Assembly (NCBI RefSeq): GCF_000150275.1
Contig: NW_002060943.1
Span: 5,290,008-5,354,007 of the forward strand
DNA from: Trichoplax adhaerens
Lineage: Eukaryota; Animalia; Placozoa
Direction of reading: 5' to 3'
DNA length: 64,000 nt
Of the stretch, positions 1 to 48,900 are shown one piece after another. The notes under the pieces are model-generated. The model was not told where the DNA came from. It worked only from the letters and a program-made list of their open reading frames with translations, and did not search any database. The position numbers and the translations under genes were made by a program. The stretch's first letter is position 1, and every line of letters starts with the position of its first letter.

Positions 1-8246
<8,246 letters not shown>

Positions 8247-32026: not shown

Positions 32027-35000
32027 TTAGCAACATCGACTGTTAGATCTTCTAAACCGTCTTGGTTTAAGGCTATCTACTTTGATAGAATCATTGATAT
32101 TGTTAGACGATATAGTATCTTCTTCATTCCTTGCTTCAAGTAAGTGTCTAGATTAATAAAAGTATAAAATTTTGTTAATTGCAAGATCAGCTACGCAATT
32201 ATTTTAAACCAGTCGATAGACTCATCGATCTGCAAACACGCACTAAAAATTTTCATCACCTTGCTAGTTGATGACATGTTTCAAAAACATGCTCTCCAGT
32301 CCTTGCACTTGTTTCAGCATACATTGCATTATGATCCTGTACAATTATAAGATCGTCAATAAAAGAAATTTAAGAGTAAAAAATCAAGTTATACTCGTCT
32401 AGTAACTTATAAATTTGAATTAGACTAATTATTTGATAAAGATCTTACGAAAGCCATCTGGAATCCATCTTCTATGCTAACTTTTCTTTGATCCGATATA
32501 TCTAACTTATTACCAACCATTATAAGTAAAGGTGGATTTTCTACCCAGTCCTAGTTATTATTATCAACATAGAGTAATTGGTTATTGTTAACATTATACC
32601 AATTCTATTAAGATATTTATAGAAATGGTATGAAAGTGAATTTTCGAATTTTTTATAGCTACAATAAGATGATCGCATCGGTACTAAAAGCAAGAAACGA
32701 CCAAGCAGTAGGTGTATCATGTTTGAAACTAAACCCTTGAAACTATGAAACTTTTAACCTACCTCAATATGTGAAAGCCAAGTCGGAATGTTTTCGAATG
32801 AGTCTTTGCTGGTAATATCAAACAGGGCAATTATTCCATCGGCTCGACGAAAGTAGGACCTAGGTAAGCTATCAAACCTACGTCAATAGTAAAATAGGCA
32901 AACATCAATCTTGGATATCCTGTGTTCCAAAAAGTGTTTCAGATATTTGCAACAGATATAGGGTAAAACATTATTCTCAATAATAGACACCATATCAGAA
33001 TTCGAACATAAAAGCTTTCCGTTAGATACAGTATGCATTTACTTATCATAATTTGTAAATTCTAATTAGCAGTATTGAGTTAATTCTTTACCTTTCTTGA
33101 CCAACGGTATCCCAAATTTCTAGCATAACGACTTTATCATCAATAATAACAGGTTTATTATGCAATCCAGGATCTGTTCATTGTGGATTAAAATAATCAT
33201 CTTAAAAGGTTAGAGTTTAATCTTTTAATCATTTTACAGAAATTAGCTCCTTTGTCTTAATAATTAAAATTATTCACTGAGCAAAGTCTGCTTTAGAGAT
33301 ACGCAATAGATTAATTTATTTAATCCTATTTGACTATCTAATACATAGGAATACAACTTGGATCTAAAGGTTATAAAATTGCAATAACATAGGTAATGAT
33401 TTTCAGAATAAATTATCTAATAATTGCGAAAGTAATGTTGGCAGATTATAGAGTTAACTATGATAGAAAGAATCAATTGTAACATTAGTTGAGTGATTTC
33501 ATTCTAGATTATCTTTTCGTCATGGGCATTAGAAAGCAATTAATGATTACACCTCCCGATATCTAAGGTACGAGTGAAGATGAAATTCTTTCATACTTCT
33601 AATGGTAACAGATTTAATTATAAAGCTTAAGTCAGAAGTAGTTCATGTGTACTTGCCAATTGTAACCCGCTGGAACTGATCGAAGTTATGATGGCAAAAT
33701 CGATTAATAAAACTGGATTTTCCAACACCAGAATCTCCTACCAGGATAATTTTAAATATTTTCATTGCTGTCATCATGGTCACATTAACCTAAGTTAGAT
33801 AGAAATAATAGAAATTCTGCAATAAATTTATGATGTTGTGAAAAATAAACCGTGGATTTACGAATTAAAACAGTTAAATTGTAAGAAATACATATCTTTC
33901 ATCTCATTTACCTCGACATTTGTCTCAACAACATCTGTTAAACCATCAACTGTATCTTTTTTATCGGAATTCATCAATTTATCCTTTCTATTTTGTTGCC
34001 ACGATGCGCTAGTTAGTAGTGAGCGTACATCATCACTCACTTTAACCTGGGAAATTTCTTCGTGAGGATCAGACTGTTTATCTTCATTATCCGTTTGATT
34101 TAATAATACATTTTCATCATTATCTAGCTGCCAGCCCTGTAAAAATCATTAAACAGCTTTTATGGATGCTAAAAATTCGTATATATTAAGTTACGACTAG
34201 GGTCCATTTAGGATCAGAAAATGATTCAGAGTAAGCTTTTACTTCTCAATATCTAAATTATACGAAAATATCATCATTGGATTATTGTCCAAAATGAAAA
34301 AAAGGAACAAGAATTCACCTCTTCCTGATATCTTTTCAATTTTGCCGTTCGAGCTAGTTTAATAAATTCGTCCCATCCCTGAATAATTGCTCTGAATGTT
34401 AAAGAATTATTTATTTATTAATTTACAAGAAATAATTAACTATTTTGAAATTGTTATGATGAGAGCAGCCATTCATAATTACGATGTTTACACTTTGACA
34501 TATACTGACTTTGCTATGATGAAATTAATCTTCTGTTATTACGATATTTATATTTAACTTATGCTAAAGTTTGCGATATGATAAAATCAATCTTATGGTA
34601 TTGCGATATTTATACTGTAACCCGCGATAAACTTTATTGTATGATAATAGCAATCTTACGATATCGCGATATTTATATTTAGCCAATGTTAAATTTTGTC
34701 ATAATAAAATCGTACTGTATATCATTACGATATTTGTACCTTAATCCTTACTATACTTTGTTATATGATAAAAGCAATCTTATATTATTATTTATATACT
34801 GTAACCCATGCTAAAGCTTGTTGTGACATAATCAATTTTAAGTTATTATGATATTAATACTATACATTAACCCAAGCCAAACTTTAACATATGATAAAAT
34901 TAATTTTAAGTTGTTACGATATTAATACTTCAACCCAGGCCGAATTTTAACATATGATAGAATTAATTTAAGTCATTACGATATTTATACTTTAACCCAT

Positions 35001-38000
35001 GTTAAATTCTGCTAAGCTAAAATTAATGTTACGTCATTACAATATCTACATATACTGTAACCTATGCTAAACTTTATCATACGATTAAATTAATCTTTAG
35101 TTACCTATTAGCGATTCCACCCGAAGTTGAAACGACCAGAGGTTCGACATATTTGTTTCGATTAAATAATTTATTATAATACGATTTCTTCTTTATAGGA
35201 GATGTTTCTGTTTTGATAACAACTGCCTGTAATGGAGTTGTATTCTCAGGTTGATTATCATCCGTTGAGCCTCTATTGATTTGAATTCTTTCACTACGCA
35301 GAGTAATGAAATTGAAAAGGTCGAAATTTAATTTATACTCTCCAATGTTATTTTAAGTTTTAGAAACTACGGATAATCCTAAATTAGAAAACTTCAAAAG
35401 CAGGCGTGAGAGTATTTATTACGATTAATACTTCACATATTATGCTAATAACTCTATTTTGGAATAGTTCTTAAGATCTCATGCTCGTTGATATTGACTA
35501 CTGTACACCGGATAACAAGTTGAAGCAAGTGCTAATGTTTTTAGGGGTAAAGAGAATCCTCCTATCTATCGGGTTATTCGAAGCTAGGAATTAAAACTTC
35601 CAGAATTCACTCATCGAAGCAAATCGAATCAATTAGTCAAATCGGAAAATAGATGTTACTGACTAGTAACAAAACACAAAAATAATTCAAAACTGATGTG
35701 TTACTAAACAGTAGCAAGATCAAGACTAACCCAAGCTCTTCAATCTACCAGCACACCAGCTGTAATTTCTACAGGCTTTTGCACGCAATTTATTCTCTAA
35801 AGTATAGCACATGAAGAAATAGCTAGTTGAACTAAATTATACTACTGGATATAAGGAACTGTATCTAAATGTTGATTGTTAGCGCTAACGTTAGCTATTA
35901 CATCAGCAATGAATAACATGACAGGTGCAAAATAATCTCAAAGACTTTGAAGGTTAGCGACTGTAATTTCATGATAGTGATGAAGAATATGAATTAGGAA
36001 TTAATACCTTATGATTTGTGTTCTATAGCAATTTTCAATATTACGTACTAGCATGAATTTTATAGTACATGAATATGTTATAGGTGGGTTTTCTAGCAAG
36101 CTATTGATTGGAAGTTTTTCTGAGATTGTACAAGGTACGAAATTAAATTAAATCTGTTAAAGAACAAAAATTATAGGATAAAACATTTTTAGATGTCTCT
36201 TAATGAGATGCTGTCCATATCATATGCATATTTATATACATTGTATATACATATACATATATATTTATCGATAGATAGACTTAAAATGTAGATAAATTTC
36301 CTCAAATAATTCATATATGGTAGTATGGAAGAAATCTTTCATTGATCTATTTCTTGCAATATTCTCGCATATATCACTAGACTGCAAAGGGATTTTCTTA
36401 AAGGGTTCAATAATGTAAAATCTATATATGGTAGAACAGAAGCAATAAATCACATTTGTAATATTCTAGTATGCAGATAATGTGGAAGGATTTTCCCTTA
36501 TAAAGATTTAGTAACGGGAAATTCATAAATGGTAGAACACAAGCAATCCCTCATTAATTCCCTTTTCGCAAAATTCTCGTATATACAGTACTGCAGATAT
36601 TGTGGGAAGATTTTCTCAAAAGATTCAATAACATGAAATTCATAAAAGTAAATGGTAATACGCAAGCAATCCTTCTTGGATTCCCTTTTTTGCAATACTA
36701 GGATAAAACTATGCTCTAATACTTACTCTGTCCTGACTGCAATGCAGATTAAACTCTTCTTGAAATTCTTTAGTATTTTTTCACCTTGTTCTTTTCTTTG
36801 AATAATAGTATCGTTGATGGAATAGATAATATCGCCAACTTTAAGCGGACTCTGTTCTGCTAAACTCCTCGATGTAATCTGTAGCAATCAAGTTGTAAAT
36901 TCATTATTAACAAGAAAGCAGCAGGGTATTTTCCACATTATACACAACATCAATGAGTTACCCTAAATCGTCTATTAATTATAGAAGAGTCAATTTGAAA
37001 ATAGAAATAACAACATACATAAGAAATATAGACGATGTGATCTTCATTTTCTCCCAAAACAAGGCCATAGCCACGTTTTCCTCCACGTAATAAAAGAGTT
37101 CTAATATTATTTAAGTCTTTATTCAAGCCTAGAGCCATTTTGGTTTTAGGTGCAATTTCTCGAATTAATTGTTGAAATGTTTGACGACTTTGAGCATCAT
37201 CATAGCTTGATATCATAATGTCTTCAGGTTTAATGACATTTTTCTCCTTCTCTTCTGCTGGATCGCTTGGTACCCAACCCTGGATAAGATTTTTACTTTT
37301 TCCTTCACCATCAGGTGATTTAGATAACGATTTAATAGCCCTAGTATGCCGAATTAATTCTTTTCTTTCCAAAACGATATCTCGCATACTTTTTTTCGAA
37401 GTTTTGCTGCTATTACTCTCTGATTCTGTACTAGCTGGTTGTTGTTTTGGGGGAAGTTCAACCAGTTCATCGACTAATTTTCGAAAGCGAGGGCTATAGG
37501 AATTTAATCCTGTTACTGCGTTAACAACGTCTTCATCTTCTGATGGCTTGCTTTTATTTTCGCTCAGTGATGATACTTCCCTTGTGGTGGAAATGACTTT
37601 TGTAACTTCTTGACTTTGATGTACAGATTCTTCTTGGCGCGATAATATCGAGCTATTGATTTGATATTGGTCATTTTCTTGCGTGGTTGTACTCACACCA
37701 TCCGCTATGGGTTGCTTCTCGTCCAGGTTAGATAGATCCATCGATGTATTTTCAGGTACTATTTGGCTTGGTGTTGTTGTAATTTTAACATCTTCTTCTG
37801 TAGTTTGAACTGATTTCTTCTCCACATTGGTTAAAGTATTGGAGAAAAGCGAATTCTTGCTGTTGATTTCATCCACTATTGCCAACTTAGTGGGTGAGAT
37901 ATCAGTGCCATTTTGATCAGCTAATTTATGCCGTTCTTGGACAGTAAGACATTCTTCCGTTTGGTATTCCATTTTAGTAATGATAACTTCCGTTTTAACC

Positions 38001-38284
38001 GTTTCTGTTCTTTGGATAACTTGTCTTTGGACTTGTACAGTATCGGAATCATGATTTTTATCTTTCGCAGTTCGGATTTCGGTCTGTTCGACAGGTAAAT
38101 TCGTTACTACTGAAATGTTATCGCCTGTCAATAAATCAGTTGGAACGATGGCATGGATTCCATTTTGTAATATTTGTTCCTTTTGCTTAGTAGCAGTTAA
38201 ATTTTGAATTTCATCGGCTAACTGATTATTTTCCATCTGATTTCCATTTTGTAGATGATGATCATGTACAGGTGATTGATCCAT
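32027..38284 (-). CDS. Large Rab GTPase with N-terminal disordered region and PDZ domain (PDZ-Rab), ~844 aa; exons 37019-38284 (5' end uncertain), 36727-36878, 35105-35293, 34319-34391, 33912-34136, 33657-33789, 33092-33173, 32763-32877, 32449-32550, 32260-32336, 32027-32147
   Basis: Ten consecutive introns are phase compatible with no stops. PDZ: RGGKRGYGLVLG...VYISY|ITSRSLAEQSPLKVGDIIYSIND. Rab: FKIILVGDSGVGKSS, WDTVGQERF, YFRRADG, VGNKLD, ETSARTG and a C-terminal RCC*. The start may lie further upstream (acceptor near 38317; the ORF is open to 38473). Confidence 0.83.
34475..35097. repeat. Degenerate minisatellite, ~60-bp unit, about 10 copies (intronic)
   Basis: Recurring ttacgatatttata...aacccatgctaaa...atgataaaattaatctt. 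Confidence 0.85.
36290..36700. repeat. Degenerate ~110-bp tandem repeat (intronic)
   Basis: Recurring aattcata.atggtagaaca..aagcaatcc and gcagata.tgtgg.agatttt. Confidence 0.65.
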
Positions 38285-38473
38285 TGGTTGCTTTAAAATT
38301 ACTTTCGAAATTTTCCCTATGCAAAGTAAATTGACCATTAATATGTTAGCGTTTGCTACAGCTGAAAGTATTTCTTCAGTCTTTCCTACACTAGACTTGA
38401 ATACTAATTTATGATTAACAGTCACAGATGCCATTACATATAATGAGAAATGATCCACTAAAATGAAGGCCAT

Positions 38474-39200: not shown

Positions 39201-41571
39201 ATAGTAAACAGGATAAATCTTTTAGACATTATTAGTAGTAATTGCGAAAGTACCATGACGTAGTGATAAATGAATTAGTCAAGAATTATTTTTAGTATAT
39301 TGAAAAAATTAAACCGCGATCAATCTATTCTTGCTAGCAGCTAGAAAAGATTAACTTAAATGCTAGCAAAGTAAGCTAATCTTGGATAAGTGCTTTCTAA
39401 GTACTAAGAAATTTTCAATGTATATTTGCGATATGAGGTATCTTTTGCCTGTCTATAAGACTATGCCTTCTTGATCATTTCTGCACCATCAAATTTTCTA
39501 ACTTCATGATCTCATTAGTAATTTAGATTGCTATCAGTACAGAATTTCTCAGGCTAGAATCAACATTTACTGCAGTGGCCATGCTACGGTACTACCATGA
39601 GGATGATTTATTGGATGCAAATATCTATCGTGGCCTACTGTGTTGAAGATTTATTTAAGCAGTTATAATTTATGCATAAATACAGCTATTAATTGCTTAG
39701 CTTGTTACTGATCTTATTCCACCTGGATTGAATTAGATATGGAGAAAAAGTTGCCATGTATAAGAATCAGCATTTATTGAATTAGCTCAGTGCCTCAGTA
39801 ACTATCTGATCGTGATTATGCTAGATTTTAAATGTTCGTGGAATAGCTTACTACGGGGTCATTAGGCAACATACTGGCCCTAAAAATGTTCCTGCTGCTT
39901 TTACTATCACAATAGCTACAGTGGTGGCGCTAGCTGGAATAATGATTACAATTTAATCATCATAAAATCGAATGTCAAAGGCTTACTGTAGGCAGTAAAG
40001 CAAACTGGACAGAATGTCAGAGATTTTATAGATGGCTACCACTGCAGTGATGCAAGGAGCCTTTTTCGATAGTAATATCTAATCCCTCAATTATTATTTC
40101 ATAGGTCTCAATTCTATCACTCAGGTGCTGTCATTTCTATTATAGATTAATATATGGCCATGAATCCCTCGAGAAGGGCTAAAACTGATTAGCAACGAAT
40201 AATATTTCATATCCAAATTTTGTAAAGGTGTATGTTAAGGAATATTAAGATTGTGACTAGACTGGAAAAGAAGAGATAGGTGGATGCAAATACACAAGAT
40301 GAACATCAATGCTAGTAGAATAGGAAGGAATATTTTCTATCTGCATTATTTCTGCATGATGGCAACATCTGTTGCTGCAATAACTATAGCCTATTCATCA
40401 CTCATGAGTAAAATAGAACATAATTTATTACCAATGATCTCTTCAATTGGATAGCGAGACTGAGATTGGAATCCGTTATGGCTACAGTAGAAGCGATGGA
40501 ATGGATATTATTCAGTAGCAATTTCTCACTTTTACCTTATCAATGGATTCTTGACCAACCTGACCTAGCAGGGAAACACAGCAATTTCTAGTTTCTAATT
40601 AAAAGAAAATCTTGATTTAATTTCTGGATTTGTCAGTATAAAGACGTTCATCTTATTCAGTTGAAATGATAGACATGAAGAAGGAAATCCTTCTAGATGG
40701 AAATGTTCGCCATAGGGTCATGTAGTCTACCGTACTTACTTTGGATAGGAGTTGATTGAAGTAGTTAAATTCTTTAATTTAGTGATGATGATGATAATTT
40801 ACTGACTTATAGTTAAGTTCTACGCTATCAAAATGTTCTTTTCTCGCTTACATCGGCAAGGATAATTAGATTGTATTCTTGCTATAGCTAAAACACCCTA
40901 AACAAGGCCATCAAAATAAAACGTTAACAATGGTGAAAATTAGTCAGCATAGCTCAAGTAAGACTGTTATTTTATTTTCTTCTCTTACCCCCCTTGATAT
41001 TTTGTCTGGCTGTAAACTAGAAAACAATTAATTGTATCAAGGATGGGCAAAGTTAATTCTATCATCAATAGCATTCAATTTTATAAAGGTAGTGGTTAAA
41101 TTGATTGACACTTTGAAGAATAGGCGAGAAAGCAGCTAATGAATACATATGTAAATGGATTGGATAGCAGACAATACAATTCTTCTTCACTTTAGAATAG
41201 AGCAATCGACGAATGTAGTGATAATTTTATCGTTAATGTTAAATACTCGATATCATTCTCAATTGATTTTCTTCCTTTTCTAATCTTACCTATTCATCAT
41301 AGTTAAAAAAATGATGGTTATATTGAGCAATATTAATTAGGCAAAAAGGGGGAAATGGTGGGACAGCCCATTCTCGGCAGGAAAATCACTACCTTGACTC
41401 TGGTCGATAAAAAATAGTTTAATTTAATAGAGAGCTTTCATTAATTATATTATCGTGACTTAGCAATAGGCAATTGGTAATTATGAATGTATTTGAGATT
41501 CTAAAATCTTATTCACAGCAGTAGTAGCCTATAAGGTTAAGAACATGACGCTTTAAATCTCCCGTCGATAA

Positions 41572-41819: not shown

Positions 41820-42545
41820 AAAGCTAGATATCCATTCCTCTATTTTACCTCCATATCAAGATATCCGTATTTCATCCCTTTTGAATTACCTCATCTTAGC
41901 ATAAGAAAGTTATCTTAATCCCATAGAAATCACTTGCTAGCCTAAGTTTTAATTAAAGTTAAATATCCACACCTCTATTTCACCTTCATATCAAAATATT
42001 CCAATTTCATCCCTTTTGGATTATATCATTTTAGCATAAACATTTATTGAATCTCATAGAAAACATTCCTANNNNNNNNNNNNNNNNNNNNNNNNNNNNN
42101 NNNNNNNNNNNNNNNNNNNNNTCTACATCAAGATATTCGTACTTCATTGCTTTTGAATTACATCATCTCACGCATAGAAAAGTTATTTTAATCCTATAGA
42201 AATCATTCACTGGCTAAAATTTTAATTGGAGTTAAATGTCCATTCCTCTATTTCAATTCCATATCAAGATATCCATACTTTATCCCTTCCTGGATTACAT
42301 CATCTTAACATGATAAGGCTATTTTAATTCCATGATAAACATCCACTAGCCTATAGTTTAATGTACCCTAATAAAAAATCTACCTAGGTTCATTTAACAA
42401 GGACTACAAAATGTCTTATTCCATCAGATCATTAAATTACTAGATCAATATTAGATGGCCATTCCTCTAATTTTACCTCTTCATAAAGAGATATCTGCAT
42501 TGATCCCTTTTTAGATTACATCATCTTAGCTTAACAAGTTATTTT
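41820..42545. repeat. Degenerate ~135-bp tandem repeat, at least 5 copies, spanning an assembly gap (N at 42072-42121)
   Basis: Recurring ccattcctctatttt...catatcaagatatcc...ttacatcatcttagc. Confidence 0.85.
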
Positions 42546-45962: not shown

Positions 45963-48900
45963 TTATAAACAGCAAGATCCTTTTCTTGCTGTATCGCTTG
46001 CATTTTCCTCAGTATTTAGCCGTACAAAACTTCGAGCGCGATATAGATCTAATTTTTTACGTTTCAGACCATCCATTTGTCGTTGCATCAGGTGTCTGAT
46101 GAAATAAGGTTAATAAAGTAAGGTATAAGCAAAATAATGATATAGAAAAAAACCTGAAATTAATGCAAAATTAAATTTGACATTACCGAACTAACTGATG
46201 AAAGCTTTCTTCAACACTTTCGCCAGTTTTAGCACTACACTCTGTAAACATGGCGTCATGAAGCTAAAATAAGATTAGATATAGAGAAATTGGTAAAAAA
46301 TTGGACCCATAAATTATTCGAAATTTTATGATTATAGTCGGTACTTAAAAGAGATACTTGAAACTTCTAAAGCAACAGTAGATCTATCTTATGTAACTCT
46401 AAAATTAATAGAGATCTTATGACTATAATTGGTACCGGCACTTAAAGAAACAATTGAAATTTATAAAGCAGCAGTAGATCTATCTTTATCCACTAAAATA
46501 TTTAAATTTATATACAATGACTCAGCTCATTTATTTTCTATACATCGTTGTTATTTTACCATAGCTAAACGTGAGCCGGTGTCAGATTTGATTTCTCTTT
46601 GATCTTGTAAATCCAATTTGTTACCGGTAATCATAATTAATACGTTCTCACTAGCGTTATCCTGCATTAAATTTGATATAGAAAACAGGCTAAAAACGTT
46701 ACTATTTGTATAGTTGGTACAATTTTAAGTAATATACTAAAATTTTGGTGTAGAAGTCAAGACTAAATATCCTTAAGATGATGAAATTACCCGCGACGAG
46801 TTTTCTACTAGTAACTAGAAGTGCAACTCAAATTCGTAGCTAATTGATGCTATGTTAAGGGCTAGTAAAACAATTTTATGCTATATCAGCTTAAGTTTCA
46901 CATGTACCTTAATGTCTGCAATCCATCCTTGTATATTGGCAAAAGATTCTTGTCGTGTAATATCGTAGAGTAAAAGAATTCCATTAGCATCCCGGTAATA
47001 GGATTGCGGAAGACTACGAAATCTATATTGAAATAAAATTAGAAGAATTCTTTAAGCTTTTTTTGCTCTTGATGTTCGATAGATTAACTTAAAATTGGAG
47101 TTTAAATTTATCATACGCGAGATTGCCAAAGTCTCTATTACAATTGTAAGCTAATTATATTTGAAGAATTTTCGAAAAATCAGTTTCAATATGAGTACCT
47201 TTCTTGGCCGACAGTATCCCATACTTGCAATGAAACCGGCGTATCATCAACCATGACAGTAGACATTTCAAATCCAATATCTTGGGTTAACATAGGCATG
47301 ATGAAAAGAGTATCAGTTTAGAATTTACGTTATCGTATCATGCAGTAAACAGAATGATTATCTCAGATTTTATATCATTCCTATTAAGCTAGTTAGCTAT
47401 GGCGATAAACTAAAGTCGCAGTAATAACCTAGTGTAACTCGATGGTCCTCAACAAAGTCATCGTAGCAAAATCGATGAATAAAACTGGTCTTGCCAACTC
47501 CAGAGTCTCCAACAAGGACAATTTTAAAGACATTTAAAGTTTTCTTCTGCAAATATATCGAATAAATAGAAGTAGATGATTAGAAGTAGATCTACTTGTA
47601 CCAATATTGTCTAGCAATGAGTATCACTGATGTCAACAGATTATTATTATAAAGGACTCCGAGAATTCGGAAGCGTGGAATTACTTTATGATTATAATAT
47701 TAGTATTAACTATACTTAAGCTATTCAAAATTTCTTACCTTTAATGACATTTTTCGAAACGTTGCCTTTTTAGCAGGCTTAATATCCGAGACTGTATTAT
47801 TCTAGAATATCGTTTAAGGTAGTAAAAATAGAAATAGTAATCAAGCATTATCCACCTTGAGAAGGATAAGGAGCTGGTAGCAAAGTATGAGATATAGTAT
47901 CACCAATGGGGAATGTAAGTTGGATAATGCTAAATCTTATACATTACTTTATCCTTATCCTGGATCACTAGGCTTTCCACTTGACCATTATGGTTACTCT
48001 CATTGCTATATAGAATAAGAAATATCGTGTTTAAAAGTCCGAATATTTTAAAATTAGAGACGAATTACTACAAGTAATTATAAGCAATAACTAAGATTGT
48101 TTTATGCCAGGGACTTCTAAGAGAATTGCCTCTTAGATGTACCCGTTTATGCTATATACTTTAGACTAACCTGTTATATTTGATTTGTTCTGATTCTGCT
48201 GCCATCAATCGATTCAGATTGCCGCTACCATTACTATTCATAGCTAGCATGCTTTGTAGGGATTCATTTAGCTGCGGACAAACGACAAAATGGTCAATGA
48301 TGTCTAATCGCTAAAGTATACTAAGGCAAGAAGGCATTATCTACTTCATCTTAATACTAGTTTTACATGGGTTTAGATGGATAAGTTTGGGAAGAACAGA
48401 GAGTTATTTGCTCATAAAGGTCAACTTTTATACTTTACTATAAATGTAATGTTTACAGGGAAATTATCTTATTATCCTTGTTGTATAGATATATTTTATA
48501 CAGAGTAATGCTGTCCTAATTGTACATTAAAGTCTTTGTTAATTCTCAATTTAGATACTACTATATAATTTCATAACTATACCGCCATTAAATGATATAG
48601 ATATGAGTACTCACTTGTAGAAGAGCTTCATTTTCATTTCGGACTTCTATTTCTGATCTTTTAATCATTTTTAATAACTTATTTAACTATAATAAAATCC
48701 CAAACAAATGATTAATAAAGGTTGTAATAGGATTTATAATTCGAACTAGAATCGTCTAAGCTCGTAAACTGTACACTCACTTAGATACAAGTGAAATGAA
48801 CTGAAGTAGTAATTAACATGGCTATTATTTTGCTATAGTTTATTCACCATTTACCTCTTGATTCCTTTCGTCCATGAAGGCCTTCTCCTTTTCATATTCG

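Follow-up and report, generated by a model that had tools for sequence, protein, structure and literature searches.

One placozoan mRNA encodes a PDZ-like domain and a Rab GTPase ending in two cysteines

PDZ proteins are known to work with Rab GTPases in trans, as RIM does with Rab3. The PDZ protein PICK1 works in the same manner, in trans, with RAB39B (PMC4383008). An additional domain within the Rab chain itself was recorded by Kloepper et al. (2012) in just three Rabs, two of which are Rab44 and Rab45 with their EF-hands, and the word PDZ is absent from the text of that study (PMC3425129). The large Rabs, i.e. Rab44, Rab45/RASEF and Rab46/CRACR2A (4R79.2 and rsef-1 in C. elegans), are composed of a long N-terminal module followed by a prenylatable Rab, and those of mammals have short isoforms as well (PMC8303950). 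We report here on a gene of the placozoan Trichoplax adhaerens, referred to below as the PDZ-Rab gene, which lies on the minus strand of a window of 64,000 nucleotides (nt; contig NW_002060943.1, positions 5,290,008 to 5,354,007), this window being the whole stretch of DNA that was analysed and having a plainly eukaryotic G+C content of ~31%. The coding exons of this gene extend from position 38284 to position 32027 of the window, and one mRNA codes for a disordered region, then a PDZ-like domain and a linker, and lastly a Rab whose end is CC. No natural protein combining a PDZ and a Rab was found in the literature, in a search that is incomplete and has domain-architecture databases outside its scope, and the PICK1-RAB39B interaction is the sole match there to the text 'PDZ-Rab'. 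The first-pass annotation of this DNA knew of no characterised PDZ and Rab protein; we provisionally agree, and the combination is taken as undescribed on the same provisional footing.

What the PDZ-Rab protein has in common with the large Rabs is a long N-terminal extension carrying a module, together with a C-terminal Rab that has a prenylation site. In the large Rabs, however, the extension consists of EF-hands and a coiled coil, with a proline-rich part in some of them, whereas the PDZ-Rab protein has a PDZ in that place, along with a rewired switch I. The EF-hand family was found in none of the exons of the PDZ-Rab gene (Pfam, expectation value E up to 1). The protein would work like a large Rab but lacks their defining EF-hand feature, and it is therefore not filed here as a member of Rab44, Rab45 or Rab46. 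Its likeness to the PICK1 and RIM systems is of another kind, as a PDZ holding the C-terminus of a membrane protein would in both cases be coupled to a membrane defined by a Rab. PICK1 and RIM are, however, separate polypeptides recruited by the GTP-bound Rab, whereas both parts are present in one chain in the PDZ-Rab protein.

Read from the raw sequence and checked by a script, the PDZ-Rab gene contains 11 coding exons on the minus strand (38284..32027), with compatible phases and no internal stop. The coding part, from the ATG at 38284 to the TAA at 32029-32027, is 2,535 nt long, i.e. 844 codons plus TAA. The protein starts with ~390 disordered residues, which are followed, towards the C-terminus, by a single PDZ-type domain, ~170 residues of linker, the Rab G domain and CC. 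Intron 6 is of the GC-AG type (donor G/gcaagt at 33656), and the other introns are GT-AG.

To follow this chain in RNA, assembled contigs of four sequencing runs (X4, X5, X6 and X7), from four studies, were aligned to positions 32440-38439. Runs with 0.95 of the sampled words were taken as genomic, and runs with 0.2-0.4, a proportion that matches the exon share, were used as RNA; X6 is recorded as RNA-Seq, and for X4, X5 and X7 the RNA origin is a guess. With each joint given in minus-strand order, as the last base of an exon and the base at which the following exon starts, exact intron skips are observed in all four runs at 37019/36878, 36727/35293, 35105/34391, 34319/34136, 33912/33789, 33657/33173, 33092/32877 and 32763/32550. 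At 33657/33173, the joint of the GC-AG intron 6, the skipped stretch ends in CT..GC on the plus strand. Single contigs lead from the acceptor of exon 1 through exons 2-6 and into exon 7 (2,099 nt in X4 rec4 and X7 rec17; 2,085 nt in X5 rec8), and a contig of 1,172 nt (X6 rec10) leads from exon 5 through exons 6-9 and contains 471 nt beyond. The joint between exons 9 and 10 (32449/32336) is supported by a loose end at 32448, which spells the start of exon 10, so that nine of the ten coding junctions are seen in RNA.

The unbroken, phase-compatible chain of 11 exons put forward by the first-pass annotation is thus present, and the RNA contigs make it one transcript. The four junctions that had been named for checking, from 36727/35293 to 33912/33789, are all seen in spliced contigs, and the RNA contigs do not show the PDZ exons terminating before the Rab exons. 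Another position for the junction of exons 8 and 9, 32759/32540, was ruled out, as the RNA contigs give 32763/32550; with the latter joint, the stretch reads HIE-DWVENPPLL.

At its 5' end, the transcript begins upstream of the coding exons. An untranslated 5' exon, which lies ~2.2 kb upstream and ends at 40536, is spliced to exon 1. The 3' end of this exon (40536..40565, minus strand; donor GATAAG/gtaaaa) is matched by the 27-letter loose ends of the X4 and X5 contigs at 38318/38304. Exon 1 (37019..38316, minus strand) is covered from 38316 to 37019 by X4 rec4 and X7 rec17 and from 38304 to 37019 by X5 rec8, and it has two acceptors, 15 nt apart, at 38316 (X4, X7) and at 38301 (X5). With either acceptor, there are stops in all three frames across the 5' junction before 38284, and the long frame can therefore not start ahead of the ATG at 38284. 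Extension of the frame 5' of this ATG, in a 507-aa open reading frame (ORF) reaching 38473, was ruled out, as that ORF is partly intron and the exon starts at 38316/38301.

Residues 1-422 are encoded by exon 1 and run through the disordered region into the PDZ, of which they contain the first half. Within residues 1-390, S, T, E and Q together make up 37% of the composition, the polar residues S, T, E, Q, N, K and D 58%, and F, W and Y 2%. The AlphaFold model of exon 1 has a mean predicted local distance difference test (pLDDT) score of 34.9, with no confident element. Both the composition and the low pLDDT of the first ~390 residues fit disorder, in agreement with the S/T/E/Q-rich disordered region of this length that had been proposed from the sequence. 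The best-supported element of this region is a helix at residues 300-319 (SMRDIVLERKELI...), and no other stretch outside the PDZ is as well conserved. An Atlas look-up with exon 1 gave weak leads, with scores of 0.75-0.84, including GIPC GH1, PDZ and L27 clusters.

The PDZ itself is split by the 140-nt intron 1 between exons 1 and 2. Its first half (37019..37105, minus strand; residues ~394-422), as read from the sequence, shows IRTLLLR, GGKRGYGL and then LVLGENEDHIVYISY, which would correspond to strands A-C. Put together, the last 30 residues of exon 1, IRTLLLR-GGKRGYGL-VLGENEDHIVYISY, can be read as a strand, a carboxylate loop made of a basic residue and G-Y-G-L, and two further strands. 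A carboxylate loop is expected to have a basic residue and G-hydrophobic-G-hydrophobic before strand B, and K-R-G-Y-G-L, then VLGE, is found here; the low-confidence model of exon 1 has three strands exactly at this half. The second half (residues 423-473) is encoded by exon 2 (36727..36878, minus strand), which has RNA joints on both sides and contains LKVGDIIYSIN and a closing strand, LICIAVR. When the 50 aa of exon 2 are used as the query, three PDZ families of Pfam are matched, namely PF17820 PDZ_6 (E 0.0018), PF00595 PDZ (E 0.0039, over positions 35-58 of the 81 of the profile) and PF13180 PDZ_2 (E 0.014). Matches in PDB are the PDZs of DegQ/DegP, KIAA1526 and P-Rex1 (E 0.02-0.7), and the best named Atlas clusters are PDZ in 10/10 cases, with scores of 0.83-0.87 that count as leads only. 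Taken as a whole, residues ~394-473 probably adopt a true PDZ fold.

Homologues of exon 1 were searched with the exon or its ORF (422 and 507 aa, respectively), among 5.8 billion proteins through a word index and, exhaustively, among 1.84 billion cluster representatives with an HMMER profile. Both searches returned one protein, P0001, from libraries that may not include the window's own genome. P0001 is encoded on a 2,601-nt genomic Logan contig (L001) from SRR30664516 and is 43% identical over the whole of exon 1, with the exon end at the same residue. On this contig, exon 1 is followed by an intron of ~485 nt and by the start of exon 2, ITSSGLAARSPLRVG, just before the contig end. This layout shows that a second, fairly distant organism keeps both the disordered region and the split PDZ. 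The carboxylate loop of the ortholog is K-Y-G-Y-G-M, and the PDZ region is the best-conserved part of exons 1-2 between the two orthologs.

The PDZ is connected to the Rab by the linker exons 3 (35105..35293), 4 (34319..34391) and 5 (33912..34136), all on the minus strand, of which exon 5 is acidic. Exon 3 is joined on both sides in the four runs (36727/35293 and 35105/34391), and exons 4 and 5 also have RNA joints on both sides. No Pfam match above noise was obtained with exons 3-5. Intron 3 is mostly occupied by a minisatellite of 62-63 bp, in ~9 copies with 67% matches (window 34515-35099).

The Rab G domain is distributed over exons 6-10, and its tail is encoded by exon 11, all on the minus strand. 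Exon 6 (33657..33789), which ends at the GC donor and is joined at 33657/33173 in the four runs, contains the P-loop GDSGVGKS and the switch I Thr. The rest of switch I (D-P-G-L) and the G3 motif WDTVGQE are in exon 7 (33092..33173). Switch II and RabF3-5 are in exon 8 (32763..32877), which is joined to exon 9 at 32763/32550. G4, NKLD, is in exon 9 (32449..32550), and G5, ETSAR, in exon 10 (32260..32336), the first 29 letters of which are spelled by the RNA loose end at 32448 and the paralogous counterpart of which lies at 46260-46189. Exon 11 (32027..32147), by sequence reading, encodes a hypervariable tail ending in RCC, followed by TAA. Four of these exons match the Ras profile of Pfam (PF00071) in a collinear way, with gaps at the split codons: exon 6 over profile positions 1-32 (E 2.9e-7), exon 7 over 38-59 (E 7e-4), exon 8 over 61-98 (E 4e-8) and exon 9 over 107-131 (E 5e-4).

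All five G motifs are present: GDSGVGKS corresponds to GxxxxGK[ST] of G1, and G2-G5 are represented by the switch I Thr (RVT-I-D), WDTVGQE, GNKLD and ETSAR. The G3 motif carries Val where Rabs have Ala (DTVGQE). As neither the catalytic Gln nor any of the nucleotide contacts is lost, the G domain is expected to be a working switch, of which the regulators and effectors may be unusual. RabF1-F5 are reportedly the Rab-specific motifs of Pereira-Leal and Seabra. RabF2-5 are recognisable as MLEIW, RFDSLP, YFRRA and ALFDIT, and RabF1, IGVDF, is replaced by IDPGL, switch I being T-I-D-P-G-L versus T-I-G-V-D-F in Rabs. The protein ends in ...NSRCC before the TAA, with the double Cys of a geranylgeranylation motif. 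Judged by these motifs, the protein would be a Rab in all respects except RabF1, and the full Rab G domain ending in CC, announced by the first-pass annotation, can be read in the sequence.

Among solved structures, Rabs head the lists of matches for each of exons 6-9. The best ones are Rab32, Rab38 and Rab9 for exon 6, Rab7 and Rab6 for exon 7, RASEF (2p5s, E 1.6e-7), then Rab12 and Rab1, for exon 8, and Rab6 for exon 9; exon 10 has a weak match to Rab5. RASEF is thus the best solved match of exon 8 only, among the five G-domain exons. Assignment to a Rab subfamily from these per-exon matches failed, as the leader differs between exons.

All our results make it likely that the gene at this locus is genuine and expressed and that it specifies a multidomain Rab of 844 residues, in which a disordered region, a PDZ, a linker and a putatively prenylated Rab follow one another. 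From established Rab biology, the CC tail would be geranylgeranylated by Rab escort protein (REP) and Rab geranylgeranyltransferase (RabGGTase), and the G domain would cycle on and off the membrane with its GTP/GDP state. The PDZ, on its long flexible tether, could bind a membrane protein or a scaffold by its C-terminal tail. Such a Rab would bring along its own adaptor, which is normally recruited in trans, much as EF-hand and coiled-coil modules come with the large Rabs (PMC8303950).

Several points, on the PDZ, on switch I and on the transcripts, weigh against this interpretation. Concerning the PDZ, the scores of exon 2 as a half-domain query (16-18 bits) are below the Pfam gathering cut-offs (23-27 bits), since a single exon offers no more than half of the domain for scoring. 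By itself, the first half has no match in Pfam or PDB, and co-folding of the two halves as two chains gave 0.18 versus a mark of 0.34, which speaks neither for nor against the domain. The PDZ had been called complete in the first-pass annotation; its GYGL and LKVGDIIYSIN are indeed present and three PDZ profiles match, but these profile matches cover half a domain and are under the cut-offs. One explanation would be that the fusion is real and that its PDZ is degenerate or does not bind peptides, being lipid-binding or structural, so that the protein would be a Rab with a lineage-specific extension and without recognition of cargo tails. The nature of the best PDB matches of exon 2, which are PDZs of the HtrA/DegQ type with E 0.02, goes in this direction. 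We nevertheless consider it unlikely, since a basic residue and G-Y-G-L sit at the position of the carboxylate-binding loop, the PDZ region is the part of exons 1-2 that the two orthologs have best conserved, and the three PDZ families and the 10/10 Atlas clusters agree with one another.

Concerning switch I, binding to REP, to guanine nucleotide exchange factors (GEFs), as well as to effectors, is not assured for a protein that does not have the RabF1 motif.

Concerning the transcripts, the RNA contigs are assembled, and a single molecule with all 11 exons was not seen. The junction of exons 10 and 11 (32260/32147) and the CC end are outside the RNA-compared stretch and are based on canonical GT-AG sites, on phase and on the same layout in a tandem paralogue. 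Moreover, contigs of low depth in three runs (X4 rec3, X5 rec7 and X7 rec16) still contain intron 6 (33174-33656), and the protein predicted from this form ends a few codons past the P-loop exon. Exon 6 begins with VNVTMMTAM, and these in-frame ATGs would permit a Rab-only isoform. Retention of intron 6 fits its weak GC donor, and it probably explains that the main contigs break in exon 7. The locus could then yield mainly separate products, namely a PDZ protein truncated by intron 6 retention and a small Rab started at the ATG of exon 6, the fusion being a minor form; short isoforms do exist for the mammalian large Rabs (PMC8303950). This is quite improbable in our opinion, as both 33912/33789 and 33657/33173 are spliced in the highest-depth contigs of all four runs and no contig starts inside intron 5. 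The contig depth is 4.8-13.6 for the retained form versus 44-64 for the spliced one, depth being a poor measure of abundance that cannot rank isoforms. Finally, De Bruijn contigs can fuse overlapping transcripts, and a contig across two genes does not prove a single transcript, but an artefact joining neighbouring genes, by read-through or chimeric assembly, is hardly conceivable here, where each link is an exact in-frame skip of a GT-AG or GC-AG intron recurring in four studies, 844 codons are read without a stop and the linker exons 3-5 have no other home.

A second Rab gene is present upstream of the PDZ-Rab gene, on the same strand of the window (45966..47540, minus strand), as detected by tblastn, sequence reading and open frames. 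Its Rab exons are located at 47540-47430, 47275-47201, 47021-46908, 46640-46560 and 46260-46189, with a last exon ending in SCCL near 45966. This paralogue is 41-59% identical, per exon, to exons 6-10 of the PDZ-Rab gene, and the positions and phases of its introns are identical, the switch I intron being in the same codon and phase. It has T-L-D-I-G-F in switch I, DTVGQE as G3 and a C-terminal tail of the CC type (SCCL). The two genes differ in the donor of the switch I intron, which is GT in the paralogue versus GC in the PDZ-Rab gene, and in that neither exons 1-5 nor the PDZ have a counterpart, by tblastn, in the paralogue. The P-loop exon of the paralogue starts at an acceptor and contains no ATG in frame, and the paralogue too must therefore be N-terminally extended. 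Candidate frames for this extension are found upstream on the minus strand (e.g. 56698-56408, 49203-49012 and 48968-48843), in a range up to ~56700. The six upstream frames that were scanned contain no Pfam domain above noise, EF-hand and PDZ included, and no EF-hand loop pattern was found in the minus-strand open frames of at least 28 aa upstream of the Rab exons of the paralogue. The two Rab genes are 7.5 kb apart, and a run of N (assembly gap) at ~42070-42120 falls between them, in what is either an intron or the 5' region of the PDZ-Rab gene.

To judge from their sequences, the PDZ-Rab gene and its paralogue stem from a tandem duplication and have a derived switch I in common. This switch I, T-I/L-D-x-G versus T-I-G-x-D, together with DTVGQE, suggests that the two proteins have regulators and effectors of their own. 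In the scenario of the first-pass annotation, a duplicated large Rab had replaced its N-terminal module with a PDZ. The duplication is supported by the tandem paralogue with its identical introns, whereas an ancestor of the EF-hand type is not, as no EF-hand is found and RASEF is the best match for 1/5 exons.

One could go further and propose, more tentatively, that placozoans have a self-contained trafficking unit, in which a prenylated Rab, with its PDZ as a cargo hook on a tether of ~390 residues, is paired with its sister Rab, and in which switch I is unread by the canonical regulators and effectors. We regard this as possible rather than probable. If it is true, a private Rab module would recognise the C-termini of particular membrane proteins, and no additional adaptor would be needed.

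The EF-hand large Rabs are the only Rabs that we found described with extra domains, and there the added module and the Rab act together. A PDZ-Rab chain occurring in nature would be another solution of this type, in which recognition of cargo or scaffold and a membrane switch are united in one protein. As its host is one of the simplest animals, it would also offer a compact system for how a Rab is matched to its cargo. At a practical level, gene models at the PDZ-Rab locus should not be split.

In the genome that contains the window (105,631,681 bases, 1,414 contigs), exon 1 and the PDZ exon are each present as a single copy. The nearest match of exon 8 outside the locus is an ordinary small Rab, at G000:C1411:2502336-2508045 (L003 ~1337-7045, plus strand). 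This small Rab has the canonical TVGVDF and DTAGQE, ends in SCCGI and resembles, by eye, Rab19/30/43.

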